This document shows, piece by piece, positions 842-60,020 of a stretch of DNA of 64,000 nt. The stretch comes from Macrostomum lignano (lineage: Eukaryota): positions 265,967 to 329,966 of the forward strand of contig NIVC01000512.1 of the NCBI GenBank assembly GCA_002269645.1, in the 5' to 3' direction. A model generated the notes under the pieces. It saw only the letters and a list, made by a program, of their open reading frames with translations. It made no database searches and was not told where the DNA came from. Positions within the stretch are counted from its first letter, which is position 1. Each line of letters starts with the position of its first letter. Position numbers and translations under genes: made by a program.

Positions 842-913
842 CTCGATCATAGCGCGAATTTTATTCCTCCTGTTTTATCCTCTGATCTCAATCTGGCCCA
901 GTGGCAGGCGGAG

Positions 914-13455: not shown

Positions 13456-13554
13456 GTGAGACATTGGCAAATCTTCACTTTTGCTCACACTATACATAAT
13501 ATATTCCTGAATTTTCATAGAGAAGTGAGGAATCTTAGAGCTAGATTCTCGAAC

Positions 13555-15110: not shown

Positions 15111-15172
15111 GCAAACTCTGTCATCAAACGATCCTACGTAACATAACACTGAGTGAAATGTTTAAATTGCAG

Positions 15173-15948
15173 CAAAAGCACTTCCAATACGTCCCCGTGG
15201 AGGACAACACCTGCAACGATGCCCGCGTTCTACTCGCCTACCTGCTCAGCAGAAGGCGAGTCTACAAGTACGTAGCAATAGTGGCCTCCGACTGTTTCCA
15301 ATTAATTAGCAGACACCTGCAGCGACACCTGTTCAGCCACCAGGTTCGCGCATTCACTGGAGATCCAGTTGTTGACATGCGAACGCGGGCTAAGCTGTTA
15401 TCATCCGAAGCTGTGGCGGATGAAGATCGGGTAGAAGGTGATGCTGAGGATGAGGAGGACGGCTCGGAGCTGCAGCAGTTCGTGCTGTTCCACATCGGAG
15501 CCGCACACCTGGCCACCACTGCGCTGGACGCATTTCGACGTCAGCTGAAAATTCCAGCCGACGAACGGTTGCACGTGTTCGTGGAGTCATCCGCGATGGA
15601 GGCGATGTTCGAGACGACCGCCGGCCAGATGCAGCTGAGGTACTTCAGCAGCAGCCCCAGCACTGTGGCACACGTGTTCGGGCCGCACGTTGACGAGCAG
15701 AAGCAGGAGCAGTACTACGATGAGCAGAAGAAGCACATTAGTAAGCTCAGCACCCTGGTGTCCGTGCTGCTGCTGAAGTTCATGGCCAGCTCCCAGCAGC
15801 TGCACATCGCCTATGCCAGGGCGAGGCAGCTGGAGCTGAAGGAGCTGAAGGAGGAGGCGGCGACAGGTCAGCTGCTGCCGGCGAGGTGCTCGGAGGATTT
15901 GGCGACTTGCCGACGGTTGCTGAGCAAGCATTATGAGAGCACCATCAG
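15173..15948 (+). CDS. GluN3-like gene, amino-terminal domain exon
   Basis: Acceptor ttgcag|, open frame QKHFQYVPV...HYESTIR, donor ag|GTGAGG. Confidence 0.65.
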
Positions 15949-21595: not shown

Positions 21596-21627
21596 TCAAA
21601 TAACATTAAAGTCGCGCGACGTTTCAG

Positions 21628-22095
21628 GTGGTCAGCAACGCAAACTGGCGCCGCGACTTTCTCACCTCAGACCCTTACCTGCTGACCTCGGTGTCAATCG
21701 TGGTTAACCGAACCGAGAAGCTCAGCGGCCGGGCGACCAGATTTGGCTTCCTCTATCCCTTCGACCTGTTCATGTGGATGTGCATCCTGGCCACCGTCCA
21801 CGTGGCCGCCGTTGCCGCCGTCATCTACGAGTGGCTCAGCCCGTTCGGCCTGACGCCCTACGGCCGCAATCGGCGCCGGGTGTTCAGCTTCCCAAGCGCT
21901 CTGACCCTCACCTGGTCTGTGCTGTTCTCGCACACGGTGCAGACTAAGTCGCCAAAGTGCTGGAGCGCCCGCTTCCTGCTGAATATCTACGCCATGTTCT
22001 GCCTCGTCTTCATTGCCAGCTACACCGCCAACCTCGCCGCCTTCATGGTCGGCGAAGGCGAAGCGTCTGACATCGTCGGCATCCACGACAGCCGG
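21628..22095 (+). CDS. GRIN3-like: GluN3-like NMDA receptor, M1-M2-M3 exon
   Basis: YEWLSPFGLTPYGRNRRRVFSFPSAL, KSPKCWSARFLLN and SYTANLAAFMVGE...GIHD closely follow vertebrate GluN3A as recalled. Canonical AG/GT. Confidence 0.92.
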
Positions 22096-22104
22096 GTGAG
22101 TCGC

Positions 22105-22340
22105 CTGTCACTCTACAAGTCTGTCACTCTATGAGTCTGTCACTCTACGAATCTGTCACTCTACGAGTCTGTCACTCTACGAATCTGTCACTCTACGAGT
22201 CTGTCACTCTACGAATATGTCACTCTACAAATGTCACTCTACGAATCTGTCACTCTACGAATCTGTCAATCTAAAAATCTGTCACTCTTACGAATCTGTC
22301 AATCTACAAAACTGTCACTCGACGAATCTGTCACTCTAGC
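22105..22340. repeat. 16-bp satellite next to the donor
   Basis: Unit CACTCTACGAATCTGT. Confidence 0.9.
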
Positions 22341-25102: not shown

Positions 25103-25944
25103 GTGAGAGCAGAGCGTTGCTATGCTATGTGTCAGTCACGACCTTTGCAACTACTAGACATGCGAGATGCGGCAGGTGGTTGCCAGGAGGGTGGGGTTGT
25201 TGTGCGATTCGCAGCCATGAGGGCCAACCCCCAAGGCACAGAGAGTGTACATGCTTGACCATCAGAAAGTCAGGGCTGCTGTACACCCTGTAAGACCGAA
25301 AAATGGAGTCCCTTATTACGAGGAAACGGAAGAAATGAGCCATTCCTGTCTCCGTAGTGATTTTTTTGAGCTAAGCCTGCCTTCAGAGAATTTCTAAGAA
25401 ACAAGATCACCCGTTCTTCCAATTAAAGCGTCAATGCTAAAAATTTGGCATTCGATAGATTGATTTTTCAACTGTCATATTGTTCGTCAGATTGCTGCTC
25501 AGGAGCCCGGCTCTGCTAGCTACTAGCTTAGGCACACACGAACACAGAGAGAGAGAGAATGAGCGAGCAGGGGGATGTTCCAGAGGAGAGGCGGATGATG
25601 GGCAAACACATATTTCCCGAGTCCGCTGGCCTCTCTTCTTCCTGGCGTGCTGTTAAACTGAAAGTTCTTCAGCAGCCTCGACAGCTGGCGGCGGGGGGAA
25701 GGGGCCGACGAAATTCCTGAAGTTTGCCGCCCAGCAGTCGCGGGCCCGAGGCTGGCGGGCATCATGGGAGAGACTTGAGCTGCAGTCGCTGTGTTTGCTG
25801 GGCCTTGCTTTGTTTACCGAGAGCGACAGGTTATGAGGAGTTGGAGCTGGTCAGCTGCCGGGCGGACCGCTGGGTGCTTCTCTGTGTGCTCAACCGGCTG
25901 CTTGAAACTCGACCTTGAATATTTCCGAGTAACTGTGCTTCGGC

Positions 25945-26800
25945 TTGCAGTGAGAATGTGCTGGAGTCACAGTGAGAATGTGCTGGAGAAGGTGAGGGAA
26001 TGTGCTGGAGTCACAGTGAGAATGTGCTGGAGTCACAGTGAGAATGTGCTGGAGAAGGTGAGGTAATGTGCTGGAGTCACAGAGAGAATGTGCTGGAGTC
26101 ACAGTGAGAATGTGCTGGAGTCGGTGAGGGGATGTTCTGGAGTCACAGAGGGAGTGTGCTGGAGTCGGTGAGGGAATGTGCTGGAGTCGGTGAGGGAATG
26201 TGCTGGAGTCGGTGAGGGAATGTGCTGGAGTCACAGAGGGAGTGTGCTGGAGTCGGTGAGGGGATGTACTGGAGTCGGTGAGGGAATGTGCTGGAGTCGG
26301 TGAGGGAATGTGCTGGAGTCGGTGAGGGAATGTGCTGGAGTCGGTGAGGTGATGTGCTGTAGTCGGTGAGGGAATGTGCTGGAGTCACAGAGGGGATGTG
26401 CTGGAGTCGGTGAGGGGATGTGCTGGAGTCGGTGAGGGAATGTGCTGGAGTCGGTGAGGTGATGTGCTGTAGTCGGTGAGGGAATGTGCTGGAGTCACAG
26501 AGGGGATGTGCTGGAGTCGGTGAGGGGATGTGCTGGAGTCGGTGAGGGAATGTGCTGGAGTCGGTGAGGTGATGTGCTGTAGTCGGTGAGGGAATGTGCT
26601 GGAGTCACAGAGGGGATGTGCTGGAGTCGGTGAGGGAATGTGCTGGAGTCGGTGAGGGAATGTGCTGGAGTCGGTGAGGGGATGTGCTGGAGTCGGTGAG
26701 GGAATGTGCTGGAGTCGGTGAGGGGATGTGCTGGAGTCGGTGAGGGGATGTGCTGGAGTCGGTGAGGGAATGTGCTGGAGTCGGTGAGGGGATGTGCTGG
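25945..26800. repeat. 22-bp satellite ending just before the acceptor
   Basis: Unit GGAGTCGGTGAGGGAATGTGCT. Confidence 0.95.
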
Positions 26801-26825
26801 AACCCACCCCCTCAACCACCCGCAG

Positions 26826-26996
26826 AATAAAGTCCGCCTTACGCCCACCAACTTCGCGGGTCCGCTGCTGCTCTTCTGCTTCGGAGTTCTGCTGTCTGGT
26901 GCCACAGCAGCCGCGGAGTTCCTGCTGTACTTTGCCCTGTTCCCCCTGCTGCGCAAGGTCAGGGTGAACCCCGCCTGCTGCCTGCCAATCAGCCAG
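26826..26996 (+). CDS. GluN3-like gene, M4 exon
   Basis: LTPTNFAGPLLLFCFGVLLSG...AEF, hydrophobic M4 helix, phase 0 at both ends. Confidence 0.85.
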
Positions 26997-27184
26997 GTTC
27001 GTGGAGGGTCAGCTCTGGGTCATCCTGATTTAGCACTTCGCATGCACTTTCCCTGGGGGGGGGGTGAGAGATGTTGCCAAATCTGGAGTCAAAATTTACT
27101 TTCTTTATCCATTTTCTTTTGCTTGATGGATTTTCTTAGATGCGTCAGAGATAAACCAATCGAGCGATAGATAGGGCTACGGAG

Positions 27185-27672
27185 AGACAGTGGAAGAGGG
27201 AGGGTGGGGACTAGGGAGAGGAAAAAAGAGAGGGAGATGGAGAGGTAGCTAGGGAGAGGGAAAGGGAGAGGGAGCGAGAAAGGGAGCTAGGGAGAGGGAG
27301 AGGGAGATGGAGAGGTAGCTAGGGAGAGGGAAAGGGAGAGGGAGCGAGAAAGGGAGCTTGGGAGAGGGAGCGGGAGAGGGAGAGGGAGCTAGGGAGAGGG
27401 AGCGGGAGAGGGAGCTTGGGAGAGGGAGAGGGAGAGGGAGAGGGAGCGGGAGAGGGAGCTTGGGAGAGGGAGCTTGGGAGAGGGAGAGGGAGAGGGAGAG
27501 GGAGCGGGAGAGGGAGCTTGGGAGAGAGAGCGGGAGAGGGAGCTTGGGAGAGGGAGCTTGGGAGAGGGAGAGGGAGAGGGAGAGGGAGCGGGAGAGGGAG
27601 CTTGGGAGAGAGAGCGGGAGAGGGAGCGGGAGAGACAGGTAGGGAGAGGGAGCGGGAGAGGGAGAGGGAGAG
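27185..27672. repeat. Polypurine (GGGAGA)n-like tract
   Basis: Nearly pure purine strand with GGG every 6 nt. Confidence 0.9.
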
Positions 27673-28314
27673 GTAAATTGAGTAGCGATGGTCTGGTGAA
27701 GCAGCAAGCTGGCGGACCAGTCCTGGAAAATAATTGCACGATCCGAAGGTGTGATTGAAGATATCTGTGACAGCATGCAATCTAATTGTGTTGTAGCAGC
27801 CCTATGTTTAACTTTCTGGCATTTTGCTACAGGTAATGTAGTAGTGTAACAGAATATTACAATAAAAATGAATACAAAAAGTAAGAGATAGATTATGTGA
27901 AAAAATCAAAGCTCGAATAGCTAATAATTAAAATTTGAATTTGGTAAAGCAAAAAAAACGATGAAAAACGGTCCAAAAACTTCAGCCAATGCTTATAAAA
28001 CTCAACATTTCCCCGGATCCCTGATGCATTTTCATAGCTAATAGCTCAATTCCGATTTCCTATAAATGATCTATTAGCCAACGGATTTTTTTCAGTTAAC
28101 AATTTTCCACCACGTACTTCCTTCTATCTGCCATGTGGATCCTCGAACCTCAGCATTTTTTATGTAGAGAGGATTTTTCTAAATAAGCAGACACCCTTGA
28201 TTTGACTCTTGAAACACGGTGAAACGGTGAAAACACGATTTAGATAGCTTCATGACAAAGACGCGGAATGAAAATGTCTATCTTGCCTACGGCTCTCTGG
28301 AGATTCCCTTGGGG

Positions 28315-28770
28315 AATTCCGCTAGGGGGATTCCGTGGAATTCCAGTAGAGGGTTCTACAAGGGGGATTTCACTAGGGGGTTCCACTATAGGGGGTTACA
28401 CTAGCGGGTTCCACTAAACGGTTCCACTAGGGCCGGGATTCTACAAGGGGGTTCCACTAGGGGATTCTACAAGGGGGTTCCACTAGGGGATTCTACAAGG
28501 GGGTTCCACTAGCGGGCTCCACTAAACGGTTCCACTAGGGGATTCTACAAGGGGGTTCCACTAGGGGATTCTACAAGGGGGTTCCACTAGGGGATTCTAC
28601 AAGGGGGATTCCACAAGGGGGTTCTACAAGGGAGTTCCACTAGGGGATTCTACAAGGGGGTTCCACTAGGGGGTTCTACAAGGGGGGTTCCACTAGGGGA
28701 TTTCACTAGGGAAATTCCAAATGGGGGTTACACTAGAAAATTCTATTAGATGATTCCATTAGGCGGTTCC
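28315..28770. repeat. 26-bp G-run minisatellite
   Basis: Unit CTAGGGGATTCTACAAGGGGGTTCCA. Confidence 0.9.
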
Positions 28771-28901
28771 ATTAGGGAACTCTGCCAGGGTGATTTCTGG
28801 GTAGCTCCCTTCTTGGCACAAGTGTATATGAGTTAGTTCTCGAGCTAGTTTTCCCCGAATGGCCAGGGCCCTAGCAACTCTTTCCCCCAAACGCCTTGCA
28901 G

Positions 28902-28984
28902 AGGGTCTACCGCCACCTGGTCCGCTACCGGGAGGCGCAGGAGAGGCGGCGGTGCAATCGCGACGCGCTGCCTGTGGCGCTCAG
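28902..28984 (+). CDS. GluN3-like gene, cytoplasmic-tail exon
   Basis: ISQ|RVYRHL resembles GluN3A TSQRLHRA. Sites ttgcag| and ag|GTGAGT. Confidence 0.75.
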
Positions 28985-29289
28985 GTGAGTGGCAGCAGTT
29001 GTTGTGACAGCAATGTGTTTTCTTTCGAATTATAGCCTGTCAAGTTGACGGGCAGCGCCAGCTAGGCGAGTGCAACTTGGCCATTGATGGGCCTCTTCAG
29101 AGTCAGAGAATTTCTACTCTCATGTTCAGGAGCTGCTGCTTTCCAAACACTACACTGCAAAGCATATCGATACCTCCGCAGCCACTCTACACTTCGTCTC
29201 TTATGCCTCTGTTATGCCCTGCACTGTAACCTCTTGGATGTCTCATTTATCACTGTCTCCACTTCTCATACTTGACCACTTCTCTTAAC

Positions 29290-29690
29290 GTCAACTCTCT
29301 CCCCATCTCACATCTCCTCTCCCTCCCTCTACACATCTTCTCCCTTCTGCACATCTCCTCTCCCTTCTTCTACACATCTCTTCTCCCTTGTTCTGTACAT
29401 CTCCTCTCCCTTCTTCTGCACATCTCTTCTCCCTTCTACACACCTCATCTCCCTTCTTCTACACACCTCATCTCCCTTCTTCTACACACCTCCTCTCCCT
29501 TCTTCTACACACCTCATCTCCCTTCTTCCAAACATCTACTTTCCCCTTCCCTCCCTACCTCTACACATTTCTCCCTTCTACAAATCTCTCCCTCCTTCTA
29601 CACATTGCTCCCCCCGTTTCTCATCTACTATTTCTCACCCATCTCCTATGCCTCCGTTTCTCATCTCCCCTCCCTTCCCTCTTCCCATTT
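29290..29690. repeat. CT-rich degenerate repeat
   Basis: CTCCTCTCCCTTCTTCTACACA-like units. Confidence 0.85.
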
Positions 29691-30186
29691 ACGTATATAG
29701 ATACTAATTTGTCAGCGAAACATCACTAATGTGAAATAAAAAACGGTTCAAAAAACCCAGGCTAGAATTTTGTAACAGAAAAACACAAATAAAAGTGGAA
29801 TTGACTTTTCAGCCAAGCTGCTGAGGAAGTAAATCCCACATTTAGCAAGCTCCCAGTAGCGATTCGTGAATTGGATTGCCCGGTTTCCTAATGGTCTCTG
29901 ATGAGGCTGCGACTGCGAAGCTGGGAAAGTACTGGACAGGGGAGAAGGGAAGTTCGAGGGGAAAATTGAAATCTGTAAGTTTCGAGCAGATCAGCGCTGC
30001 GGTTAGAAATTTTCTTTCGGACAAGTCAAAGCCAAAGCGGCTGCTTTGGCCGGATAATTCGAGATGATAATTGCAATTTAAGACACGTGCCGAGACTTGG
30101 GTGCAAATTTGTGGCCCACATTTTGGTGCAATTCTATCACTAAACTGTGGGACTTCTGTGTGACACTCATGCAGCTGAGGTTCGAT

Positions 30187-30838
30187 GCCATTCTCTGATT
30201 AAGCTGTGAGACTTCAGTGCCATTCTCTGATTAAGCTGTGAGACTTCAGTGCCATTCTCTGATTAAGCTGTGAGATTTCATTGCCATTCTCTGATTAAGC
30301 TGTGAGATTTCATTGGGTAAGAGACTAATTCGACACTCTAAGTCACGGTAAGAGACTAATTCGACACTCTAAGTCACGGTAAGAGACTAATTCGACACTC
30401 TAAGTAACGGTAAGAGACTAATTCGACACTCTAAAGTAACGGTAAGAGACTAATTCGACACTCTAAAGTAACGGTAAGAGACTAATTCGACACTCTAAGT
30501 ACGGTAAGAGACTAATTCGACACTCTAAAGTAACGGTAAGAGACTAATTCGACACTCTAAATAACGGTAAGAGACTAATTCGACACTCTAAAGTAACGGT
30601 AAGAGACTAATTCGACACTCTGAACTACGGAAAGAGACTAATTCGACACTCTGAACTACGTAAGAGACTAATTCGACACTCTGAACTACGTAAAGAGACT
30701 AATTCGACACTCTAAAGTAACGGTAAGAGACTAATTCGACACTCTGAACTACGGAAAGAGACTAATTCGACACTCTGAACTACCGTAAAGAGACTAATTC
30801 GACACTCTGAACTACCGGAAGAGACTAATTCAACTCTA
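30187..30838. repeat. ~32-bp satellite that switches to its complement at 30316
   Basis: GCCATTCTCTGATTAAGCTGTGAGACTTCAGT up to 30315, then GGTAAGAGACTAATTCGACACTCT..., which is the exact complement read in the same direction. Confidence 0.95.
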
Positions 30839-31017
30839 AAGAAGAACCTAACCGAAGACCCCGACAACCTATGAGCATATTAACCTTGGTTTTTTAATTT
30901 GAATCGACGGAATTTCTTCAAAGTTATGAACTCGGTACGAAAGCTTATTCGGTATGGTAGCGATGTCACACTTAGCGTATTAAAGTGTTAAAGGTAGTTG
31001 TATTTAGCGAGCGCGTC

Positions 31018-31466
31018 CGACGTTTTCATGTGGTCGCTGTCCCTGTCAGACGAGTACAGCGACCCTCGGCTAGTGAGCTCCTCTGGGCTGACGTGCTGGT
31101 AGTCGTAGTAGTCGTTGTCGTCGTCCTGCGTCGGCGTTACTACGATAACTTGTTATAGCGACACGTCTGTCTGGACCTCACGTCGTAGTCGAGTGTCGAC
31201 CTCTCGCATCTGGTCCGGTAGTCCCGGTTCTCGACGGTCAAGTTGGCCCTGTACGCGGTGTACGCGCTCGCTTAGCGCTTAGACGATTCTCTAGCCCTTT
31301 AAGATCACGCTGCGAACGTTGCAAGCTCCCGTTTAGGTTCCGCCTGTAGCTCAGGCTCGACGACCTCTGTCGGCGAAGTTGCCCGCCGCGGTCGCCGTCG
31401 CCGGCCCCGTATCTCGACTGCGTGTCCTTAGACGACCTGAGCGATCGGTTTGGCGAACTGAAAATT
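31018..31466 (+). CDS. Probable last exon of the GluN3-like gene, readable only on the complemented sequence, with probable indels
   Basis: The complement gives cgcgcag|g ctg caa aag tac (RLQKYTSDRDSLL, in phase 2), a long frame ...HQQQQQDAAAMMLLNNIAVQTDLE...RERIANLLRDRE, and a third frame ending KPLDF*. Confidence 0.6.
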
Positions 31467-31974
31467 ATTAATTAAATAGCGTCATTAATTAAAAGAGAAC
31501 TGGTACAAACGCTTGAGCTAGTATTTTAGTATGAATATCTCATACGGTGAAGAACGAGCGAATCTCCGATCCCCCGCTAAGAGGGTTACTTTTACCATGG
31601 ATCCGGTTTTTCGCGGTCAGTATTAAGTCTCAGCAACGTCTCCATTGTGTCAATTTAATCCTTTCTTCACTGAGATCTGTTGACTTTGCTACTCTACAGA
31701 GCCATTCGATTTTCAGCAGTCTCAGTGTATTCTAGTTAATTTCGAAAAATAACAGACGCTGAGACCCCGCGAAGATCTGAGACCCCGGCATCTGAATGAA
31801 CATAGACTCCACACGACATGAGAAAAATGCTAGGACGTTGAGTGCACTACGTGAACAGTAGAGTGGCAGCTTAACGTCAGTAAATTTAGTAATTTCTCAG
31901 CTAGGTCACTGCAATCTCAGTGATTCATAGTACAACCGTTACTGCATCGCTAAGAACGGTGCCATTGTAAAAGT

Positions 31975-33512
31975 TACCCAGATGACCCAATCCCCGCTAA
32001 GAGATGTGACCCAGTCCCCGCTAAGAGATGTGAACCAATCCCTGCTAAGATGTGACCCAATCCCCGCTAAGAGATGTGACCCAATCCCGCTAAGAGATGT
32101 GACCCAATCCCCGCTAAGAGATGTGACCCAATCCCCGCTAAGAGATGTGAACCAATCCCCGCTAAGAGATGTGACCCAATCCCCGCTAAGAGATGTGACC
32201 CAATCCCCGCTAAGAGATGTGACCCAATCCCCTAAGAGATGTGACCCAGTCCCCGCTAAGAGATGTGACCCAATCCCCGCTAAGATGTGACCCAATCCCC
32301 GCTAAGAGATGTGACCCAATCCCCGCTAAGAGATGTGAACCAATCCCCGCTAAGAGATGTGAACCAATCCCCGCTAAGAGATGTGACCCAATCCCCGCTA
32401 AGAGATGTGACCCAGTCCCCGCTAAGAGATGTGACCCATTCCCCGCTAAGAGATGTGACCCAATCCCCGCTAAGAGATGTGACCCAATCCCCGCTAAGAG
32501 ATGTGACCCAATCCCCGCTAAGAGATGTGACCCAATCCCCGCTAAGAGATGTGAACCAATCCCCGCTAAGAGATGTGACCCAGTCCCCGCTAAGAGATGT
32601 GACCCATTCCCCGCTAAGAGATGTGACCCATTCCCCGCTCTAAGAGATGTGACCCATTCCCCGCTAAGAGATGTGACCCAATCCCCGCTAAGAGATGTGA
32701 CCCAGTCCCCGCTAAGAGATGTGACCCAATCCCCGCTAAGAGATGTGAACCAATCCCCGCTAAGAGATGTGACCCAATCCCCGCTAAGAGATGTGACCCA
32801 GTCCCCGCTAAGAGATGTGACCCAATCCCCGCTAAGAGATGTGACCCAATCCCCGCTAAGAGATGTGACCCAATCCCCGCTAAGAGATGTGAACCAATCC
32901 CCGCTAAGAGATGTGACCCAATCCCCGCTAAGAGATGTGACCCAGTCCCCGCTAAGAGATGTGACCCAATCCCCGCTAAGATGTGACCCAATCCCCGCTA
33001 AGAGATGTGACCATCCCCGCTAAGAGATGTGAACCAATCCCCGCTAAGAGATGTGACCCAATCCCCGCTAAGAGATGTGACCCAATCCCCGCTAAGAGAT
33101 GTGACCCATTCCCCGCTAAGAGATGTGACCCAATCCCCGCTAAGAGATGTGACCCAGTCCCCGCTAAGAGATGTGACCCATTCCCCGCTAAGAGATGTGA
33201 CCCATTCCCCGCTAAGAGATGTGACCCAATCCCCGCTAAGAGATGTGACCCAGTCCCCGCTAAGAGATGTGACCCAATCCCCGCTAAGAGATGTGACCAT
33301 CCCCGCTAAGAGATGTGACCCAGTCCCCGCTAAGAGATGTGACCCATCCCCGCTAAGAGATGTGACCCAATCCCGCTAAGAGATGTGACCCAATCCCCGC
33401 TAAGAGATGTGACCCAGTCCCCGCTAAGAGATGTGACCCATTCCCCGCTAAGAGATGTGACCCAATCCCCGCAAAGAGATGTGACCCAATCCCCGCTAAG
33501 ATGTGACCCAAT
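31975..33512. repeat. 24-bp satellite inside the complemented block
   Basis: Unit CCCCGCTAAGAGATGTGACCCAAT as written (corrected: GGGGCGATTCTCTACACTGGGTTA). Confidence 0.95.
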
Positions 33513-35019
33513 CTAATATGTCCGTTCATGTTCGTAACACTCGTCGCGCCGGGGTTCGGACTTACGTCAATATTAAAGCTGGCGTTTGTTTTTATTTAGA
33601 GCTACGTTTTTACTTCAGTCTTTCTTTTCGAAAAAGCAACTTGAAGGTAGGACTGTCAAGCAGTTGATTCCTTCGAGAGAAAGTTCACGTCTGTCTTCAA
33701 AACTATAATATAATAAATATAATGATATCGATCTTTCTCATGTGTTCGTCGTTAGTTCTTTCGTTGTCAATATTCTGAGACGATATGTCCTTTTTGTCGT
33801 TTTGTCCACTAGACTATTTTTATAAATATTATAACCAAACCTTCTTTACAGGAACGACATTGAATGAGGTACAAACGCCTAATTATAAAAATGTGTTCTT
33901 TTACACGTCGTTGAGACTGCGTTCCTATTTTAGTGTCTTTCCGACAGAATATCTTGTTGCCTCTTAGAAGAGTCTTACGTTACACCTCTGTCCTCGCTCT
34001 CGCTTATAGACTCGGGTCAATGGCCCTGCTACTCTTGGTTACTCGTATCTCGAGTGAACTCCTTACTTGCTATCAATCTACTATTTTCGTTACGTTATTT
34101 TACTCTGTTCTAGACTACTTTGTACAAAACTTAAAATGATGAAACATATTGTTTAAACTTTTCGTGGCCACACACATTTAATTTTGTTTGTGCCCGTCCT
34201 CCATACTGTAGACGACTTCCATTGACCCCGATACCGCCGATTAGTGAATAATAATATAGTATATATGACCCCGACGCCACTTATTTGTTTGTGTCATTTT
34301 TATAATTTTGAGAAGTTTGAGATGACGTCGCGCTTTGGGTCTTCATCATAGATGTCAAACACTGTTACTTTTACACAGTTAAATTTTGTTTTATTGTCTA
34401 TTGAGACTCGTTCGTGGCTAGGTCGACTGGTCTGGGTGTCTTTGCGTCTGTGTTCTTCTGTGTGTTCTTCCTTTTCGTAAGCGAGGTTTTCCACTAAATT
34501 TATTTATAAGAATGCTTCTCACCTTCTTATTTATAGTTAGATACATTATTTTATTTGAACGGAAATATATATCGCACTTTCTCGCGTCCTCCGCTAATCT
34601 AATGTGCTTCGTCTATACGCGCGTTTTTTACTTATAAACAAAACGAAATAGTGAAGATGATTATCATCGTGGTTTAAATATTTTAATATTTCAGTGAACA
34701 AACTATAAGTATACGGTTTATCAAAGTTCCTATCAAAACGCCTAGAATTTTGTGACGCTCCATGACACGAATAATGTGTGAACGTGTACGTTAGAGAGAC
34801 CGGTAACTAAAGACGAATTGCAGCTATGAAACAATACAGTACGTGAAATCCCTTTAAAGGCTTTTCAGAATACCGATGTAAGATGTGGTAGACACCAAAC
34901 ATAATTGGTAACGAAAATTATTTGTGTTGGGTTCTCACACTGTCAGCGATTTCACACTTTTTGTTGCTTTGTTTGTTTTTAGTTTCGACGACCTCGTGTG
35001 CTTGTCTCCCGGTTAACCG

Positions 35020-35850
35020 AGTGACGTAAGGTCACGACCTGACTCGCCCGTCGTACCAGACCCGGCCGAATTTAGAACATGTCCGGAAGAAGGTCGCCGT
35101 GACGCACGTGGTGTAAGAGGCCAATAGTTGCGGTATTTAAGCCGCCGTAAACGGCGCGCCGCTGTCGCCGCAATCGCTCCGACTCCTCCGCAGCGGCGGT
35201 CTCTTGCTCCTGCTGTTACTGCTGCCGCCCCAGTGCCGGTCGTCGACAACGCCCAGAAGGCCCGGCGGCGGACGTGGCGGCGGAGACGGAGGCGGCGGTC
35301 AGCTTTGCCGGCCTCCTCCTTTGCTTTTGCTCCTGCTTCGGCTGTCCGCTTTGCCGCTCTGCCGCTTCGGCGGTTTTTTACGCGGTGAGGGCCGCGGCTG
35401 CAACTGCGACTCGCCGTTCCGATTTGACCGCGTCGTCTGACCTCCGCCGCGCCTCCCGCCCCGTGACGTCGACATGTACACGTCTCGGACGACGACGACG
35501 ACGCCTGCGTTAGCGCCGCCTAGTTCGCGAACCAAACGGGGTTAACCACAGCTCTTAGGTTGTCGCGCTGAGACTACGACGCCTACGACGACCGACCGGA
35601 GCTACAGTTAAAGCTTAAGCAGGAGCAGTCGTAGCAGGCGAACCGACAAGAGGCGTCGAAGTCGGCGTCGCCGCCGAAGCCGTTGTCGCGCACCGTCCGT
35701 TAGCCGGTCCGCCGCGTGTCAAACTTAGGCCCGCGGTCTGCTGTCGCACTCCGACTGTTCGTGTCTCAGGTCGAGCCCTAGCGTCGCGAGATGCTACGGC
35801 TCCCGCAGGAGCGGAAACATTTGATAGTGATGAAGCAGCGGTCCGACGTA
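35020..35850 (-). CDS. 276-aa C-clamp zinc-finger protein, read right-to-left WITHOUT complementing (minus strand of the corrected sequence)
   Basis: Uninterrupted ATG-to-TGA ORF of 831 nt: MQPGDEVVIVYKGEDALGIVERCDPELDSVLV...[35 protein letters not shown]...MQ*. Matches the ZNF395/ZNF704/SLC2A4RG C-clamp KCRKVYGME.RD.WCTACRWKKAC.RF. Confidence 0.9.
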
Positions 35851-36130
35851 CGATCTAACTTATTTAAGAATGATAGTTACGTGGAACCGAATCCGTACTT
35901 TACGATATCGACTTAGCCGGTCTAACCCGACTTTTTCCAACCTATTACTTGTATTGAGGATATTTTTCTTGAATGATAGGTAAAAATGTTTGATGAATTC
36001 GGATTCTGTTACTTATCGATTTACTGTAGAAACCGTTCGTCACCTAACCGATACCTCTTGGGTACGTGACCAGACGAACTACATTGTTTACATTGTTGTT
36101 TAACTGTTGGTACTACTGTACGTGTACTTC

Positions 36131-38336
36131 ATGTTCCCGACGAATTATTTATTCAAACACCTTTTTCTGTGAAGACTTATACGAAGGTGAATTTTTTAAT
36201 GAACGTAAATAGGGGTGAATTACTCTGAAAAGTTGTATCAAAGATCTATCTAACTACGTAAAGAGGTAGGATATCTTGGTACGATGTTTTGTCAGGGAAT
36301 TAAGGTGGATTCACTGTCGAAGGTCGAAACGAAAGTTCCGGAGAGGTTCGAGGAACGCACTCAGTTTCGTGAAAGGGAACTCTAACAAGAACTAGAAACC
36401 TTTCTTCTTCAGTCGACCTCGTTCCAACCCGTTTATCCGACCCATACCGTCGTCTGAGTCAACTCAACTATGGTCTTTGAGGATACAGTGGGACCGAACC
36501 ATTCGATCTTGTAACAATACCATGTCCTTTTACCGTACCATAGATGATAAACCGGTGAGAACTAACTCCTTGACGTCGTGGATCCCGTTCGTTTGTGAAG
36601 TCATGTTTACTGGTCAGTGACACCGTGAAAGAAACTCATCTTATCCGTCGTCCTATAGTATGATGGTCTTCTTCTGATGACAATACTGGAACGGTTATGA
36701 AGAGAGTGTATCCTTAAACTATCTCCTTAGGAGAAGTTTTCGTTAGGTGACGGATGAGATCCTAAAACATAGATCCAGTATTTTCATTTGGATTCAAAGT
36801 AGGGGATAATCCTATAACAGATGGTTAAAACTTCGAGGACGTAGTTAAATAACTCGTACTTCAAACGTTTGAGTTGTGTTCGAACGTAGATCCAACCCAA
36901 GTTCACTATCCCGTAGATCGTACATCTGTGAAAGGAGTACGGATCTACTAGTACGTCCTATCTTTACCACGAACTTAGACTTTAGGGTTGTACAAAGAAC
37001 TAAAGTACTTGATAGTAAATAATTAGAAGTAACTAGAAACCTGTGTTCGGTGACAATATAAACATTATCGGTTTAAATCTATCAGAAACACAAATAATAG
37101 TAGATCGAGGTCCGTCGATCTTGTTTTAAACGGTTTGGTGAACATGTGGTAACAGACCCTGACCCCACTCCGAAATAGTAGATTACGAAAAACTTCATAG
37201 ACGTTCGTGAGTTTCCGTCTAACCGGTTCAGTTTTAACTTGTTCCTAACGTTGAACAGACAGTGTAACTTGTAACAGTTAACGTTCCGTTCCAGATCTCA
37301 GTATAGTGAAAAAACTGGTAACGTAAAATCGTAAAATCAATCTCCGACTTTTAACTGTATTTTCTACAGTTAAAGATATATTTTTCTTTACGGTTTATTT
37401 TATAATAAAATAAACATGTTTTCTTTCAATCTAAAAGGTGTTTGACTAATCCGTCACGAATAAATCGACCGTGACCGGTTTATTCAAACGATGATAAATC
37501 GACCGTCAGGACGGGGTGACGGTCATTTTATTCGAACAGTGATAAATAAATCGGTCGTTAGGACGGGGTGACGACCAGTTTATTCGAGCAGTGATAAATC
37601 GGTCGTTAGGACCGGGGATTACCGGTGCGGTAATATATATAAATAAATTCTATAAATTTGAAACCCGTTATGTTTCATCCATATCACTTATATTTAGTTA
37701 CATCTAAGTCATGTTAAATAATAAACGGAAATTCAAACAAATTAACAAAGACCTTCAGAACGTATAAGGCTTTTAATAAACATCGTCGTCTTTTGTATAT
37801 TTGTTTAATTTTTAATTAATACGTATAAAATGAAAGTGAAATTAGAGATTTAGTTTTGGTGAGTAATTTCGGTTTTTGGTGATGTTTGTGGAAATAGTTT
37901 TTTGAGGTTTTAACATTATATTTATTAATCGAACATCATACAATTTAATAATTAAATTCCAGTACTGTTCGTCACGCATATATATTTATATATATTTACA
38001 TAAAACTGATCGTACGGTAACCCCTTAAGGAGATCATTATCACTCACTTGTCCCTTCTTGGATTGTGGTTTAGGGAACCGCGTCCAGTTGTCCTTTACAC
38101 CACAATCGGTTCTAACGGCCGATTTATCACTGCTCGAATAAACTGGCCGTCACCCTGTCCTGACGGTCGATTTATCACTGTACGAATAAACTGGCCGTCA
38201 CCCCGTTCTGACGGTCGATTTATCACTGTCCTAATAAACTGACCGTCACCCCGTCCTGACGGCCGATTTATCACTGCGCGAATAAACTGACCACGACCGA
38301 TTTATTCGTGACGGTTAAATAATTCGTTGGGAACAT
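36131..38336 (-). mobile_element. Degenerate mariner relic inside the complemented block, with a MITE in its right TIR
   Basis: Corrected ends TA-CAAGGGCTGCTTAATAAAT... and ...ATTTATTAAGCAACCCTTG-TA. Decayed transposase with an HTH (QSAFECLQILQKAL...VYKWF) and PYPAYLPNLAPADFFFPKIKNNLKGKCF. About 1.34 kb without the MITE. Confidence 0.8.
37451..38314. mobile_element. MITE/foldback element (~860 bp) with subterminal tandem repeats and AT-rich core
   Basis: CCGTCACGAATAAATC at 37451 and its reverse complement GATTTATTCGTGACGG ending at 38314. The repeat arrays at both ends are inverted. Confidence 0.75.
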
Positions 38337-40817
38337 TAATACACTTTATCAAAAAATTTAAACCTTGGGTTAAAATTTTTCATTTTATTTATGAGACAAG
38401 CTTTTTCTTTAACGGTACTTTATTACCCCATCCGGATTGAATTCTCGACCTATTTTTATTTTCATCCGGGATTCTTGATCTTCATTATGATAATGATCCG
38501 GATTTGTTGACTAGACATTTACAGTGTATACAAACAAAACACACCGAACGTGTAACATTTGAAACAGGTTTAAGATAATCCGGATCCGGATCATGAAGAA
38601 CAGTCGACACTGTTTATAGGATCAAAGAAAACCAGCTAAAAGCAATAATTTTTTAAATCTGGAAGACTCCGAATAGTTCTGTTATGCTTCCAAAATAACC
38701 ATAATGATAGATTTCCTTTATTTCCTAATCTGTTTTTCAGTAATCTGCTTTGTTGTGTGGGATAGATTTCCTGGCCTAGCATATCTGAATCTAATTTGCC
38801 AACTGCTCGAAGCCGTATATTTGATTAATAGGCCTATCTATGACGAGAAATAACTTATTTTAGCATGTCATAGCTTAGTTTTCGCAGAATCGCAGTAGCT
38901 AAGGGATTGTCTTTAAGGCGGGCAAAGAACAATACCAGAGCACGCACGCACGCAGAGAAGCGTGCGTTAAGCAAAGAACAGCTAGCATTTGATAATTTAG
39001 TACTGACTGTTGTACTGTAAGCCTACTGTCATCTGTTGTACGCTCGCTTTACAACAAAATGATTTCAAAATTTCATTATTGAGATACACGTAAAACAAGT
39101 TTTAATATAACTTTAAGTATTAATTTGGTTCAATTAGATACGTTAGATTATTAAATAAGGTAAAAATTTGAATGCCAATTTTATCTAAAATATATATAAA
39201 GTAGCTGTGTCCCACTCGTGAGGCCATTCTATCCTCGGAAAACACGGCCTTACAGACCAGTAATGAATGCAGCGCTGCATGTAGCTTTATTTTGTTGTAT
39301 TGAAAACATTTGCGCACGCATGCACCAGCCTTGTATAGAGAATACAAATGACTCCAAACTCCCATTTTAGGCCTAGTTTTGTGGATAATTGGAAGTAAAG
39401 ATTGTAAAGAATCAATAAAGATTGATTTAAGGATTTTACTAAAGTTCAACAAGGTCGATAAAGTGCTACTAGGCCTATATTGAATTTTTTGTTTTGAAAA
39501 AAATTGATAGGCCTATATTGAATTTTTTTGTTTTGAAAAAAATTGATAGGCCTATATTAATTGAATTTTGAAATATTATAAACTGTTAAATTTAATTTTA
39601 TACATTATATGTATAATTGTTTAATTATTATTAAACTAAATAATTTAAAATCATAAAATGTAGGCCCCTATAATACATACAACTTAAGACAAAAAAGTCT
39701 CTTCATCTTTGTATAAATTGGTAGGCCTAGAACTTTTAAATTAGGCCTATGCTTTGTCTAGGCCTGTATCAATGAAATATGATAGGCCAAAGATTTTTTT
39801 ATTGTTATTTAGGAGAGAAGGGAAGGCAATCTTTTGGAATACTATCGACAACAAGTAATGTGATAATCTGCTAATCAAATTTAACAACTGCACTTGATAA
39901 ACCAATGTTTATTGTACTTTATAAGCCAATGATTATTGCACTTGATAAGCCAAGGATTATTGCACTTGATAAGACAATTATTATTGCATTTGATGTGTAA
40001 AGGATTATTTTACTAGATGAGTAAAAAGATTATTGAATTTGATGGTGCATCAATTATTGCACTAGATGATCAGGGGATGCCTGATATTGGGAAAGCGAAA
40101 GGCTGGCTCTTAGGAGGGGGTACATGCCATCATGCTTGGGCACAACCTTGGGATTCATTTGGCCGTTTCAATTGGCAACATACACATGTAAGTTGCTATT
40201 GGACAGAATAGTAATCACGTGACTGCTCTCAGCCAATAGCGACTTACATGTATGTGTTGCCAATAGAAACGGCCAGGTGATTCCTAAAGTTTTGCATGTA
40301 TGCATGCCATCTTGGAGTATACTATCTGGGGGATGCTTGCCATTGTATTTTGGGGATTTTGCTATTGTATTTGGGGGGGGGTACTTACTTTTGTATTTGG
40401 GTATATGTTTGCTATCTTGGAGGAAGGGGGTAAGGATACTTTTCTGCTTTTTTAATAAATACCAACATCAAAAAGTCTATGAAAGCTTAGTATATGCCTG
40501 TGTATACTAGTATATGCCAGAATGTAGCTTTGAGATAAATTTTGTATGCTAGTATACACTAGCCAATGCTTTGTATGCTTGATTAATCTTGAATTTTCTG
40601 CATTATCGACCTTATTGCATAGGTAAGCCTTGTAAAGGATTATTCTCCTTTAGGTTAGTAAAAGCAAAATCAAGTTTATAGAAATATAAATTTCAATACT
40701 GCATAGACACAAGCTATTGGCTTCTTTACAAACTAGCAATCATTATCTAGAACATTTTATTTAAACTTCAATTGAGTAGAGCAAGATTAATAGCATTTTG
40801 CTGGCTCATGCTTCCAG

Positions 40818-43800
40818 ATGCGCAGTGAATCTTGGTTAATGCTGCTTTGTGCTCTGTTCTGTTCGGCATTTGTGCCAGCCCAGTTCACGCAAGAGTGCCG
40901 TTCCGATACCTACCCACCCCCAAGCAGCTCAGAGGTGGAGTGGTTTGATGTCAGCTTAGACGAAGCTCCAATTATTCGCTGGCGCCATGTGGTAGCGCGC
41001 CGTCAATCCCAGATACGCGACCTACTGTTGCAGTTTAAAAATTTCATTCGGCAACTGACCGGCTCGAGTGTGTACTTTAACCTTGTTGCGCGGTCTCTGA
41101 CTCTTATTGCGCCCACTGTGCCGCAGCCCTACCAGGACGAAATGGTTGGCATTAGCACAGTGACTGGCATTCCATTGGGCGAGATTTTGCTTTACAATAT
41201 CTTCTACGAAGCCACTAACCTGTGCACGTCTGTGTTGGCTGAGGATTCCAAGGTAGATATAATATTTACTATCTTCTTAGTGAGACTTTCTGCTCAAGTC
41301 TGACAACACAACAAAAACAACAAAATACGCTGTCAGGATGGCAAAAGTCAGCGTCGCAGGGCGCGCTTCATGGCTTGGGCGCGAACAAAGGCCGCGCCAC
41401 CGGCAGTGTCCGGGGCGCCGGCGTCAGCCAGCAGACAGTCGACGTAACGCCGAGTTCGCGCTTGACCTCGCCGGTAGGGTGCCTGCAGTGTGAACAGCAG
41501 CACCTGCACCGGCTGTGGGCAGTACGACTCGGCGCAGATGAGATGGCCTGCGAGCTGGAGTCGCCGACGGCGCAGTAGATCGCTTGGACGTGGCAGGCCA
41601 GCGCGGCGATAGAGTGCCGCGTTGGTGACTCGCTCGACGCCGATGTTGAAGGCGGCGCGCAGCAGGCCAGCGTGCGCCGCATCGACTTGCTGAGACTTCT
41701 CAATTCTAAGACCCATTGAAAACGATACTCTACGGCCCCAGAGTCACTATAGAAGCGTCCGAGAGTAGTTTCAGAGTCGCAGACAATAAAGCATCTCAAA
41801 TTGGCTCTTAGGCCATCCTTTTTGGTAACTTGCGCCGTGCCGTGACATCTCGTCGTTTTGGACTCGTCTAGAGTCACTTCTTTCGTATTTACCTGTGTTA
41901 TCTGCAACAACTCTGGGGTGACGCAATTGACGGAAATGGCCCGAATGCCCGATTTTTTTAAGGGTGGCCCGAATTTATGTGTAGCTAATGGGCCTGATTT
42001 TTCCTCACTAATTCTTATTCTCTATTGACGAAGTCGTGAGAAGGACAGCCTTGCAGCCTTGGATTGCTGACCATCAGGGCACTTGTTGTATCACAATCGT
42101 GTCTGGTGGCTAAAGGTTGGGCTGCTGCCAGTCTGTAGGTCTCACCAGACTCAAAGAATTTGTGCGCCAGTGCCTATGCTGTATGCCGCTGGCAGCTGGA
42201 GGAGGAAAGATGATAATAACGTAAGAAAAGGGAGAAGCTGGAGAAGAGTCACGTCAGATATCCAAAATGAAAGTAGAGCCAGCAAGAAATACACCGACTT
42301 GGAGAAGTTGGTTCAGTAGACGCCCGAGCAGATTAGGGAGAAGCTGAAGCAGAGCAACTGTTGTTGGAGACGACAAAGGCCAAGGAAGCAAAAAAGTGCG
42401 GCCCGAAAAAACGGCTACCCCTCCCTCCCACAACTGATCGGGAGCTTTTTTGTGCGTATTTTTATTATTAATTCTCATTCTTATACCATGTACTCGTTAT
42501 TGATCATCGTTTCCATCTTGTCAGGGAGTCCTTTACCACGCTCGCAATCTGGATTTCGGTCTCTTCTTTGGCTGGGACAAAGCCAAAAAGACTTGGCTCG
42601 TCACCGAGTACCTTCGGCCAACCATTGTGAACATCCGGTTCAAGAAGTCCGGCCAGACGGTGTTCATGTCCACCCACTTTGCCGGCTATGTTGGCATTCT
42701 GACCGCCCTGAAGCCGGGCAGGTTCAGCCTCACCGTGAATTCTAGAAATAGTCTCGATGGCAGCTCGACTCTCGGCATCATCGAATGGATTCTGGGCAAG
42801 AGGGACGCCGTCTGGATGGGCTTCCTAACTCGCAGAGTCATGGAGACGGCCGACAGCTACGCCCAGGCCAAGCAGATGCTGACGGGCACCAAGATGCTGG
42901 CACCGGCCTACTTCATCTTGGGTGGCAACAGCACTATGCAGGTTCGTGAGTTACTAAAATTAGAATAATCGAAAGAGTATCCGATTTTATTAGTGACTGT
43001 ATTGTCAGATAAGGCTAGCTAGGCTTCCAAGGGGCTCTATGCACTGCTAGGTTGACTCAGCTGCAGAGGGGGGGGTCCGAGCATCCGGATACAACAGGGA
43101 AAGCCCCGGATACACCCCGGCAAGCACAGGCAGCTGGTGTTGCCGTGTCCGCAGCGCGGTCCCCCTCCGGGGAGTCCAGGAGGTGGATGGTCACTCGCCC
43201 GGTAGCTTTTAAGTAGCGGACGAGCTGGCAGAGATTCTCGGGCCTGAAAACGTCGAAGAGGTCCGAGTTTGTGCCGAGGTAGATGAGCCTGTCCTGGGTA
43301 AAGACGGGGCATTTGCAGGTGAAGTGCTCCGCATTCTCAACACCTAAGAGGCAGAATGGACATTCCTCACTGCTGATTTTTCCGTGGAGGTGACGATGAC
43401 TTGCAAAACAGCCATGACCCGGGAGGGCCATGGTCACCGCCCTAGTGTCGCTGCGGCTTTACATAGGTTAGATAGAACTTTATAATTGCTCACACAACCC
43501 TGCGGATTAGATCGAGTCTAAGAATTCTGTAGTCTAAACTTTATATATTTATAAATATTTGATATTCAAAAGTTAAAAGTCTCGAAATTACACTGTCCGA
43601 CAAGCCAAATCTACTACAAATCAAATGATTCTAATCTCCTCCCGGCTGCACTGGCGCAGGGCTGCATCATCACCCGGTCCCGAAACGCCGCCATCGACGT
43701 GTGGGAGCGCTCGGCGGCCGCCAACCACACCTGGTACCTGCTGCAGACCAACTACGATCACTGGAAGCCACCGTTTGTGCTTGACGACAGGCGAACCCCC

Positions 43801-43980
43801 GGCAACAAGTGCATGATGGCCAAGGGTCAGGCTAGCATGGGGTTCAAGGAGATCTTCAATGTGCTGAGCTCGATTCCTGTGCTCAACAAGCTCACAACTT
43901 ACACGGCTCTGATGCGGGTGGACACGGGAGAGTATCACAGCTACCGCCAGACCTGCAAGGACCCGTGTCCGATTTGGTAG
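40818..43980 (+). CDS. ASAH1: Acid ceramidase paralog 1; exons 40818-41252, 42525-42941, 43660-43980
   Basis: Signal peptide, YEATNL-CTS autocleavage Cys, [42 protein letters not shown]-terminal CKDPCPIW. All joins are phase 0. Confidence 0.92.
41300..41716 (-). mobile_element. 3' fragment of an RTE-like non-LTR retrotransposon in ASAH1 intron 1
   Basis: LRAAFNI...TNAALY...RRRRLQLAGH post-RT motif, followed by a TTG-rich tail. Confidence 0.7.
43020..43445 (-). mobile_element. 3' fragment of a CCHC-bearing LINE in ASAH1 intron 2
   Basis: GHGCFASH...CPFC...ENAEHFTCKCP zinc knuckle typical of I/R1/Jockey-group ORF2 ends. Confidence 0.65.
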
Positions 43981-44267
43981 ATTGGCATTAAACTGACTCA
44001 ATTTGTGCTTGTTTTATAAAGCAGATTTTAACTGCTTTGGTGCGTGGCTTTCAATTTTGTTTTTTAAATTCCATTTTCACTAACTTCCTGCATTCAGAGT
44101 TTTTTAATGCACTTTTACAATATTTTCTATCTTCCGCAATAGTCAGTTGTCTTTGATCGCTTTTAAAAAATATAATATTTTGTAAGCTCGATTGAAGCTT
44201 TGCTTGTCACTATAATAAACTATTTTGTTGATCCTGATTTTTTAATACTTGCTAGCTGATTCAAAGA

Positions 44268-44830
44268 CTTAGGGAGCGGAGAGGCAGATTCAAGGACTTA
44301 GGGAGCGGAGAGGCAGATTCAAGGACTGAGAGAGCGGAGAGGCAGATTCAAAGACTGAGGGAGCGGAGAGGCAGATTCAAGGACTGAGGGAGCGGAGGGG
44401 CAGATTCAAGGACACTGAGGGAGCGGAGAGGCAGATTCAAGGACACTGAGGGAGCGGAGAGGCAAATTCAAGGACTGAGGGAGCGGAGAGGCAGATTCAA
44501 GGACTGAGAGAGCGGAGAGACAGGTTCAAGGACTGAGGGAGCGGAGAGGCAGATTCAAGGACACCGAGGAAGCGGAGAGGCAGATTCAAGGACACCGAGG
44601 GAGCGGAGAGGCAGATTCAAGGACTGAGGGAGCGGAGAGGCAGATTCAAGGACACTGAGGGAGCGGAGAGGCAGATTCAAGGACACTGAGGGAGCGGAGA
44701 GGCAGATTCAAGGACACTGAGGGAGCGGAGAGGTAGATTCAAGGACACTGAGGGAGCGGAGAGGCAGATTCAAGGACACTGAGGGAGCGGAGAGGCAAAT
44801 TCAAGGACTGAGGGAGCGGAGAGGCAGCGG
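44268..44830. repeat. 29-31-bp minisatellite
   Basis: Unit GAGGGAGCGGAGAGGCAGATTCAAGGAC(AC)T. Confidence 0.92.
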
Positions 44831-44967: not shown

Positions 44968-46398
44968 ATGAAGCTGACGCCCGAGCTTATACAGAACTCG
45001 GTGCAGACCACTAATCCGCTGGGTGACCGCGAACTAGATCTGCGAGGATACAAGGTGGCTTTGTTAGAGAATCTCAGCGCTACTCTGGACCAGTTTGATA
45101 CCATCGACCTCACAGATAATGAGGTATATATAATGCTTCCATTGCAACACTATCATTGATGTACTCTCAGCTTGATGCATCACTCTCTGTTCGTTGTTTG
45201 GCCTAGCTGATATGCATGTACTCTCCAATCTCACTTTCTCTTCCTCTTAACAAACTGCCGGAACGGAGAGACAGATTCTTCCTCTAACAAACTGCCATTC
45301 TTCCTCAAACAAACTGCTATTCTTTCCCTAACAAACTGCCATTCTTCCTCAAACAAACTGCTATTCTTTCCCTAACAAACTGCCATTCTTCCTCAAACAA
45401 ACTGCTATTCTTTCCCTAACAAACTGTCATTCTTTCCCTAACAATCTGCCATTCTTCCTCAAACAAACTGCCATTCTTCCTTCAACAAACTGCCATTCTT
45501 CCTCTAACAAACTACCATTCTTTCCCTAACAAACTGTCATTCTTTCCCTAACAATCTGCCATTCTTCCTCTAACAAACTACCATTCTTCACCTAACAAAC
45601 TACCATTCTTCACCTAACAAACTACCATTCTTCACCTAACAAACTACCATTCTTCACCTAACAAACTACCATTCTTCACCTAACAAACTACCATTCTTCA
45701 CCTAACAAACTACCATTCTTCACCTAACAAACTGCCATTCTTACTGCCCTAACAAACGCATTCTTCCCACGAATCGGCAGATCCGCAAGCTGGACGGCTT
45801 CCCCCACCTGCCCCGGCTGGCAAACCTGATGCTGAACAATAACAAGGTGATGCGCATTGGCGACGGCCTTTCAAGCAGCCTGCCGCGCCTGTCGACCCTC
45901 CTGCTGACCAACAACTGCCTGCAGGAGCTGGCGGACTTGGAGCCCCTGACCGCCCTGAAGCGGCTGCGCTTCCTGTCCCTGCTGAAGAACCCCGTCTGCA
46001 GCCGGCGCAACTACCGCCTACACGTGGTGCACAAGCTGCCCAGTCTGCGCTTCCTCGACTTTCGACGCATCACCGACGCCGAACGTCGACAAGCGGCCGC
46101 GCTGTTTACCTCCGGTGGCGTCGGGGATGTCGCCGATAAATCGGCGGCGAGCTTGAAGTCCAAGCCTGCCAAGACTTTCACGCCCGGAGCGCCAGTGCCG
46201 GCGGCTGCTGCCGCTGCGTCGGCGCCTGTCTCGGCAGCCGGCGGCCCGACTTCCGCTGACCTGCTGGCTGTGCGCGAGGCGATCCGGCGGGCAAACACCC
46301 TGGACGAGGTGGACCGGCTCAACCGGCTGCTCACTACAGGAAACTATGCCGGCTTTGCTAAGACTGGCGGCGGAGGCGGCGGAGAGAAGCAGGCCTGA
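44968..46398 (+). CDS. SNRPA1: U2 snRNP protein A'; exons 44968-45123 and 45781-46398
   Basis: MKLTPELIQNS..TNPLGDRELDLRGYK...DQFDTIDLTDNE|IRKLDGFP, leucine-rich repeats, YRLHVVHKLPSLRFLDF, C-terminal AIRRANTLDEVDRLNRLL. Confidence 0.95.
45240..45765. repeat. ~22-bp intronic satellite in SNRPA1
   Basis: Unit TACCATTCTTCACCTAACAAAC. Confidence 0.9.
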
Positions 46399-51632: not shown

Positions 51633-52475
51633 CATCAGTAGTGCAATTTGATGGCACTTTAAACGAGCTACTACTACTAATTAAGACGCTAAAACAAGTT
51701 TACGTGTACCAAGTAAACCTATACTAAACTCTACTCTAATTTTTATCAAATGAACGGGGTATTTTTATGTTCATTATGTGCTTACAAGTGCTAAAATGTT
51801 CGAATTCGCACCAGATTTCTCATTGACTTTGCTTGTCTTACAATGCTCTCAAAAACCTGTTTAATAAGAACAACGTCGGTGAAATTTGAGCAAGAAGAGA
51901 GCAATTGCTCATTTCCAATAGTGCATATGCTCCGGAACACAGTTTTGTGACCTCTAAAACAGACGCGGTGGCTGACAGGCGTGTCATGTGCTTTCATGCA
52001 GCTTACTTTGAAAACCTAGATGTACACTTTGTACATCAATTGGTCTAAATAATCAGTCCATACTTTGTGTACGACGGTCAGATGTGAAAGTTCGTGCTTC
52101 ATGGACGGATTATCATCTGTTTTAGTTGGGCGTACGCGCTCATTATCGAGAGTGATAGCATCACCTGGCAGAGATGAAAGCAGCCTATGGGCCTTGCCAA
52201 TCATAAGTTTATTTATGTTAGAATAGTTCATATATAGGGTCCATAATAATGCCTTATCAACTGCAATTTGCGTCATATTTCAAAGTGACTTTCTCTCTTA
52301 CCGTGTGCGTGCCTGGTGCAGTTGGTTTTATCTCTAGCTTTATCAAGTAAGTGGCCGCAGCCAGTATAGCGAACTTGTCTGTTATAGTTGTGGCATAAAA
52401 CTGACCCAACCCACCAGAGAGCCCGGGTGCAAACTTAGGTTTGGCGTACTGTTTCTATCTCAGAGTTTCGCAGCC

Positions 52476-59109: not shown

Positions 59110-59394
59110 TGAGCTGGGTTCTGGTGAATCGCTGCATTTTTGGGCCTGCATAGCACCAGAATGATTTATGTTGAATGAGCCTTCAAGCAAGTTTAGATGA
59201 TTTACTAGCAATCTGGCGCCCAATAAGCGAGAGACAAAAATTATTTATGAGAATCCTTTAAAATGAGAGCACATTTTCTGTAAAGCATTCCTATTTCCGT
59301 TTAAAAAATCACCTTTTCGAGTAAAATTGTTCAAAGAATGGGATAAAATTTTAGGAATAACTACATGTAGCTCGTAGATTCTGACCTCTCAGCC

Positions 59395-59865: not shown

Positions 59866-60020
59866 AGTGAGCCTAGACGGATAGCCTAATTTATTTAGCA
59901 TCGGGGGTCACGTTACTGATAGATTAAGGATCAAGTGACCCAGCAAACTAGTCAATAGTCTGAGGGTCTTTTAGTGCAACTCCAGTACAGCTGATCTTAT
60001 TTTTGTCTTTCTTGGTTCAG

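Follow-up and report, generated by a model that had tools for sequence, protein, structure and literature searches.

How does a stretch of DNA come to hold a complete protein sequence that neither of its strands encodes? In the window, by which we mean the whole 64,000 nucleotides of Macrostomum lignano DNA analysed here, translation of the plus strand read backwards, from position 35850 to position 35020 in frame 0 and without complementing, gave an ATG-initiated open reading frame of 276 codons plus a stop, the product of which begins with MQPGDEVVIVYKGEDALGIVERCD and carries a C-clamp in its C-terminal part. This backward frame had been put forward in an earlier note, and translating the reversed segment confirmed it. 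On both real strands the longest ATG-, GTG- or TTG-initiated ORF overlapping the same interval is 86 aa long, and no Pfam match was obtained for the real-strand ORFs in the interval, nor for a stop-free minus-strand stretch of 168 aa. In the window as written, no gene exists at 35020-35850 on either real strand.

The product of the backward ORF was compared with known proteins, and its coding sequence with three native copies of the locus: L001 (contig NIVC01005020.1, which holds the PAA46165.1 gene on its plus strand, at 10001-10831), L003 (contig NIVC01003816.1, a second independent copy) and L002 (a further native copy). The protein is 100% identical to M. lignano PAA46165.1 (BOX15_Mlig021442g2) over 100% of its length with an E value of 2e-178, and the 831-nt CDS read backwards from the window shows 0 mismatches to L001, one to L003 and two to L002. 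The length of the open frame by itself is just mildly unusual for DNA of 64% GC. The idea that the frame is open by chance and its C-clamp likeness coincidental in GC-rich, low-complexity DNA could draw on the 10 of 2000 dinucleotide shuffles of the segment (0.5%) that gave at least 276 open codons, and on the many long stop-free, repeat-derived frames found in all orientations of the window, but next to the identity with a database protein, the perfect nucleotide match to the native CDS and the C-clamp shared by 399 library representatives at E<=1e-3, its probability is practically nil.

Judged by these identities, the backward ORF is a real, already annotated C-clamp protein gene of M. lignano. 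Assembly GCA_002269645.1 annotates Mlig021442 three times, as g1 (PAA49675.1), g2 (PAA46165.1) and g3 (PAA81832.1); each model is 276 aa long, they differ by at most two residues, and all represent the identical gene, with the sequence recovered from the window being 100% identical in protein and identical in CDS nucleotides to g2. UniRef names the protein 'DUF4772 domain-containing protein'. The sequenced DV1 line is known for large duplications, and the three annotations fit these. In the orientation of the window, the native gene lies at the same coordinates, on the minus strand, as a single uninterrupted CDS, and an in-frame stop is found six codons upstream of its ATG. The GenBank gene models of GCA_002269645.1 were built from genome-guided transcript assemblies (PMC5730564), and transcription of Mlig021442 is therefore implied.

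Mlig021442 is unreadable in the window because the block at 30316-38772 has been complemented in place. As an explanation of the whole, we consider it almost certain that this block is the base-by-base complement of natural DNA holding the C-clamp protein gene; unlike the GenBank copies of Mlig021442, the window has the 8.5 kb of the gene's neighbourhood complemented with the order of the bases kept. Comparison with native DNA spans window positions 25467-44827, and the remainder of the window was judged by Pfam matches and an internal repeat test. By blastn, L001 1066-7080 aligned with window 44827-38773 in ordinary reverse complement at 97.7%, and L001 15570-20399 aligned with window 30315-25467, also in ordinary reverse complement, at 99.4%. 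The intervening L001 7081-15569 found no match in the window as given, and was matched at 98.8% by window 38772-30316 once the latter had been complemented. The junction coordinates are contiguous, with 7080/7081 of L001 facing 38773/38772 of the window and 15569/15570 facing 30316/30315, so that no base is lost or gained. Viewed base by base, the window switches to the complement at 30315/30316 and back to the same bases at 38772/38773, and the identical two breakpoints were recovered by blastn against L003. Overall, the window is 98.2-99.4% identical to the three public copies and base-identical to none of them, the differences comprising a few SNPs and mostly indels in repeat length; the window was therefore probably drawn from another assembly or another copy of this locus.

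The left edge of the block provides an internal proof of the artefact for which no outside sequence is needed, as it falls within an array of ~32-bp units that switches to its own complement at 30316. TRF described the array as two, which divide at 30312/30316 and have consensus units complementary to each other. When the 64-kb window was compared with its own complement by blastn, no second flipped block was found. A GA-rich simple repeat at 27166-27677, which reads nearly equally forwards and backwards, mimics a reversed match; this is an effect of composition and not a second artefact. A further tandem array, of 24-bp x 64 at 31983-33513, falls inside the complemented block.

The strands of DNA are antiparallel, so that an inversion gives the reverse complement, and we know of no biological rearrangement that yields the complement without reversal. 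The block is colinear in order with its flanks and its bases are complemented; it is therefore a product of sequence handling or a deliberate control, and the complementing may have originated in either a handling error or such a control. Under this explanation each base of natural M. lignano DNA at 30316-38772 would have been swapped computationally for its complement with the order unreversed, after which the coding strand of Mlig021442 would be recoverable solely by reading the plus strand backwards, a reading that would be impossible for a polymerase or a ribosome.

Two biological accounts of the block were weighed against the in-place complement. That the window is faithful to a real molecule, with a hidden gene expressed through an unconventional 3'-to-5' reading, is scarcely credible: the perfect protein obtained on backward reading is the sole point for it, while all known transcription and translation run 5' to 3', the sequence in normal orientation is present in three public contigs, and the block of exactly 8,457 bp has base-sharp edges, cuts a tandem array in mid-unit and extends far beyond the gene. 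An equally low probability is given to a natural inversion in the chromosome, or a rearrangement of another kind, that would set this copy apart from the reference contigs. The genome of M. lignano, a neopolyploid, contains many duplicate blocks that have been rearranged (PMC5730564), but an inversion would have made the gene a normal plus-strand ORF, where no real-strand ORF is seen, and it would have reversed the order of the block relative to its flanks, where the order is colinear and the bases alone are complemented; the reverse complement with reversed order that marks a natural inversion is absent from 30316-38772. Reversal of the whole window was also considered and rejected: the counts of stop-free frames are alike in the four orientations, flank ORFs have Pfam matches on real strands, and native contigs align normally with the flanks.

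With the in-place complement as the preferred explanation, the main value of the locus is one of quality control, in that 30316-38772, as given, is not natural DNA and any other finding inside it requires equivalent re-reading. Real coding sequence can be recovered from such a mirrored block, and the recovery should not be called a 'hidden gene'. The earlier note had presented it as a gene beyond the reach of standard annotation, a claim that fails since GenBank has the native gene annotated three times and it is unreadable here merely through the complemented block. The coding sequence, the C-clamp and the single uninterrupted CDS, which the same interpretation contained, all stood. The features of the window are collected in Table 1.

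Table 1. Features of the 64,000-nt window, with the complemented block and the protein gene image inside it (positions of the window; ranges within the protein in amino acids).
Feature	Position	Strand	Evidence or remark
RVT_1, 404-aa stop-free frame	842-2053	+	Pfam; retroelement remnant or copy
DNA_pol_B_2 and Endonuclease_7, 447-aa ORF	5110-6450	-	Pfam; organellar/viral type B polymerase
Lig_chan exon	21610-22131	+	Pfam
~32-bp tandem array over the left junction	30126..30841	.	Units to 30315 natural, from 30316 own complement; TRF, blastn of window against its complement, junction view
8,457-bp block of natural M. lignano sequence complemented base by base, order kept; artefact	30316..38772	.	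blastn against native L001, L002 and L003
Image of the Mlig021442 CDS, 276 codons plus stop	35020..35850	-	Translation; 100% identity to PAA46165.1; 0/831 nt mismatches to L001 10001-10831
C-clamp, aa 234-260, Cys235/248/251/257	35071..35151	-	PDB 7dta_A, spider ZNF395, invariant columns, precomputed PF27556 ZNF704_C
N-terminal beta-hairpin region, aa 1-34, like the last third of DUF4772	35749..35850	-	Sub-threshold Pfam, BLASTP, low-confidence model
NAAA-beta and CBAH exons	40794-41300, 42504-42965, 52338-53012, 53464-53925	+	Pfam
LRR_9	45706-46395	+	Pfam

The C-clamp is defined as a 30-residue zinc-binding motif of four conserved cysteines, in which 12 residues separate Cys1 from Cys2 and Cys3 follows closely on Cys2; the residues between Cys3 and Cys4 include basic ones, which are required for binding to Helper sites (PMC3896468). 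In the flatworm protein the motif lies at the C-terminal end of the 276 residues, and its cysteine spacing, C235-x12-C248-x2-C251-x5-C257, fits this published definition. Between Cys3 and Cys4, the stretch CRWKKAC provides the basic residues R252, K254 and K255, which are invariant or conserved in the alignment. Residues 233-260 match the solved chain of the SLC2A4 regulator (7dta_A) with an E value of 4.8e-9, the C-clamp is 78% identical to that of spider ZNF395, and the product carries a precomputed match to Pfam PF27556 (ZNF704_C). The C-clamp recognised by the first reading of this DNA is thus genuine, with the spacing, the RWKK basic stretch, the 7dta match and PF27556 in agreement.

Outside the C-clamp, little of the Mlig021442 protein is predicted to be structured. 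Residues 1-34 align with profile positions 78-111 of the 112 of DUF4772 (PF15997) with an E value of 0.046 and 14.9 bits, below the cut-off of 27, and by BLASTP the N-terminus matches residues 73-121 of spider ZNF395 with an E value of 9e-5. A helix is predicted at residues 39-72, and residues ~75-230 are of low complexity and predicted to be disordered. The AlphaFold2 model, computed from a 4-sequence alignment, has a mean pLDDT of 48 and a pTM of 0.23, and the sole N-terminal structure that it contains is a two-strand hairpin with strands at residues 7-12 and 15-21 and a pLDDT of 65-74. An SH3/Tudor-like barrel had been suggested for the N-terminus; a beta hairpin was modelled at moderate confidence and the barrel is not established at this mean pLDDT. 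No HMG box was found in the protein by Pfam at E<=1, and no C2H2 finger by pattern search or Pfam, the finger columns being a gap in the family alignment, in agreement with the earlier reading that both domains are absent. A 16-aa tail (aa 261-276, window 35023-35070), which that reading had omitted, follows the C-clamp.

Judged by its sequence, the protein belongs to the ZNF395/ZNF704/SLC2A4RG (Glut4EF) family, in which it is divergent. The non-TCF C-clamp proteins compared were ZNF395 (PBF/HDBP2), ZNF704 (GIG1), SLC2A4RG (GLUT4EF/HDBP1) and Drosophila Glut4EF, with which it shares the C-terminal position of the C-clamp, equal cysteine spacing, the basic stretch and 65-81% identity in the C-clamp segment. 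Its N-terminus has a partial, sub-threshold match to the end of DUF4772, and the flatworm protein lacks the C2H2 finger. With 276 aa it is also smaller than its ZNF395-family relatives (320-560 aa), and most relatives stop two residues past ...ACTRF, whereas the flatworm protein continues into its 16-aa tail. Among named relatives, the nearest are the ZNF395/ZNF704-like proteins of a mosquito, a chiton and vertebrates, which have a C2H2 finger. TCF/Pangolin and the TCF1E/TCF4E isoforms carry a C-clamp of matching motif type, but the flatworm protein has neither their HMG box nor a beta-catenin-binding region.

The closest parallel in layout is an uncharacterised protein of the soft coral Dendronephthya gigantea, XP_028405853.1, which has a Tudor-like N-terminus, a C-clamp, a short tail and no recognisable C2H2 finger. 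It differs in its length of 365 aa, in a different and more complete N-terminal domain and in its low similarity outside the C-clamp. As the soft-coral protein is also finger-less, the minimal architecture is not unique to the flatworm, and the likeness suggests that the ZNF395/ZNF704 family may have an old or recurrent stand-alone form with this finger-less layout. By regular expression, 92 of 145 C-clamp relatives have no C2H2 finger, an uninformative share given that the short representatives in the library are mostly fragmentary predictions.

The canonical ZNF395-type protein has DUF4772, a C2H2 finger and the C-clamp in this order, and the question arises whether the 276-codon ORF is one exon of a longer gene of this type, with a full DUF4772 and a finger. 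Just the last third of DUF4772 is recognisable, so that the rest could sit in an upstream exon, and incomplete gene models can occur in this assembly. The reading frame itself makes such a gene improbable: its ATG stands six codons past an in-frame stop, it closes with a stop of its own, and both ends of the protein lie in one uninterrupted frame with no finger between them, where the canonical C2H2 position is. In addition, all three transcript-derived models are 276 aa long, and a tblastn search of the native contigs with spider ZNF395 yielded no other exon-like match in the 10 kb on each side. A stand-alone C-clamp with no C2H2 finger, the architecture described in the earlier note, has survived these tests.

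With regard to function, the C-clamps that have been studied each bind a single zinc ion, and in TCF/Pangolin and HDBP1/2 the C-clamp suffices for binding to GC-rich Helper-like sites (PMC3896468); by analogy, the C-clamp of the Mlig021442 protein is predicted to bind zinc and GC-rich Helper-like DNA sites. Since studied C-clamps have these properties, the flatworm protein would most likely act as a sequence-specific DNA-binding regulator through its C-clamp. A fuller proposal, in which the natural gene would encode a minimal C-clamp regulator that consists of a half-Tudor-like hairpin and the C-clamp, has no C2H2 finger, and binds Helper-like sites through the C-clamp only, at sites that could overlap those of TCF, is made tentatively and we regard it as rather doubtful. 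Putative competition with TCF at Wnt Helper sites is a possible, speculative extension. The underlying gene is already known from GenBank, and a finger-less C-clamp protein is a minor variation in a known family; the mild biological point is the absence of the C2H2 finger from a member of the ZNF395/ZNF704/SLC2A4RG group in a flatworm. Should its gene model be confirmed, it would offer a convenient natural test of the activity of a lone C-clamp.

The flanks of the block carry ordinary genes on real strands, as seen by Pfam on the ORFs of the window, and outside the block the long stop-free frames in mirrored orientations are tandem-repeat translations throughout. Long tandem arrays were observed at 13500-15200, 25900-27050, 31983-33513, 56750-58000, 59330-59900 and 61000-61850; they contain stop-free frames of 150-500 codons in four reading orientations and are a source of false ORFs. 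The 447-aa ORF with DNA_pol_B_2 overlaps a 417-aa ORF without a Pfam match, and the region that they cover on the minus strand (5110-7606) may belong to a mobile element that carries polB. An ionotropic glutamate receptor gene is the probable source of the Lig_chan exon. On the plus strand, an NAAA/acid-ceramidase-type hydrolase is present as two tandem paralogues, at 40794-44000 and 52338-53925, with the LRR_9 gene between them, and these NAAA/CBAH and LRR_9 neighbours are also called on the native contigs.
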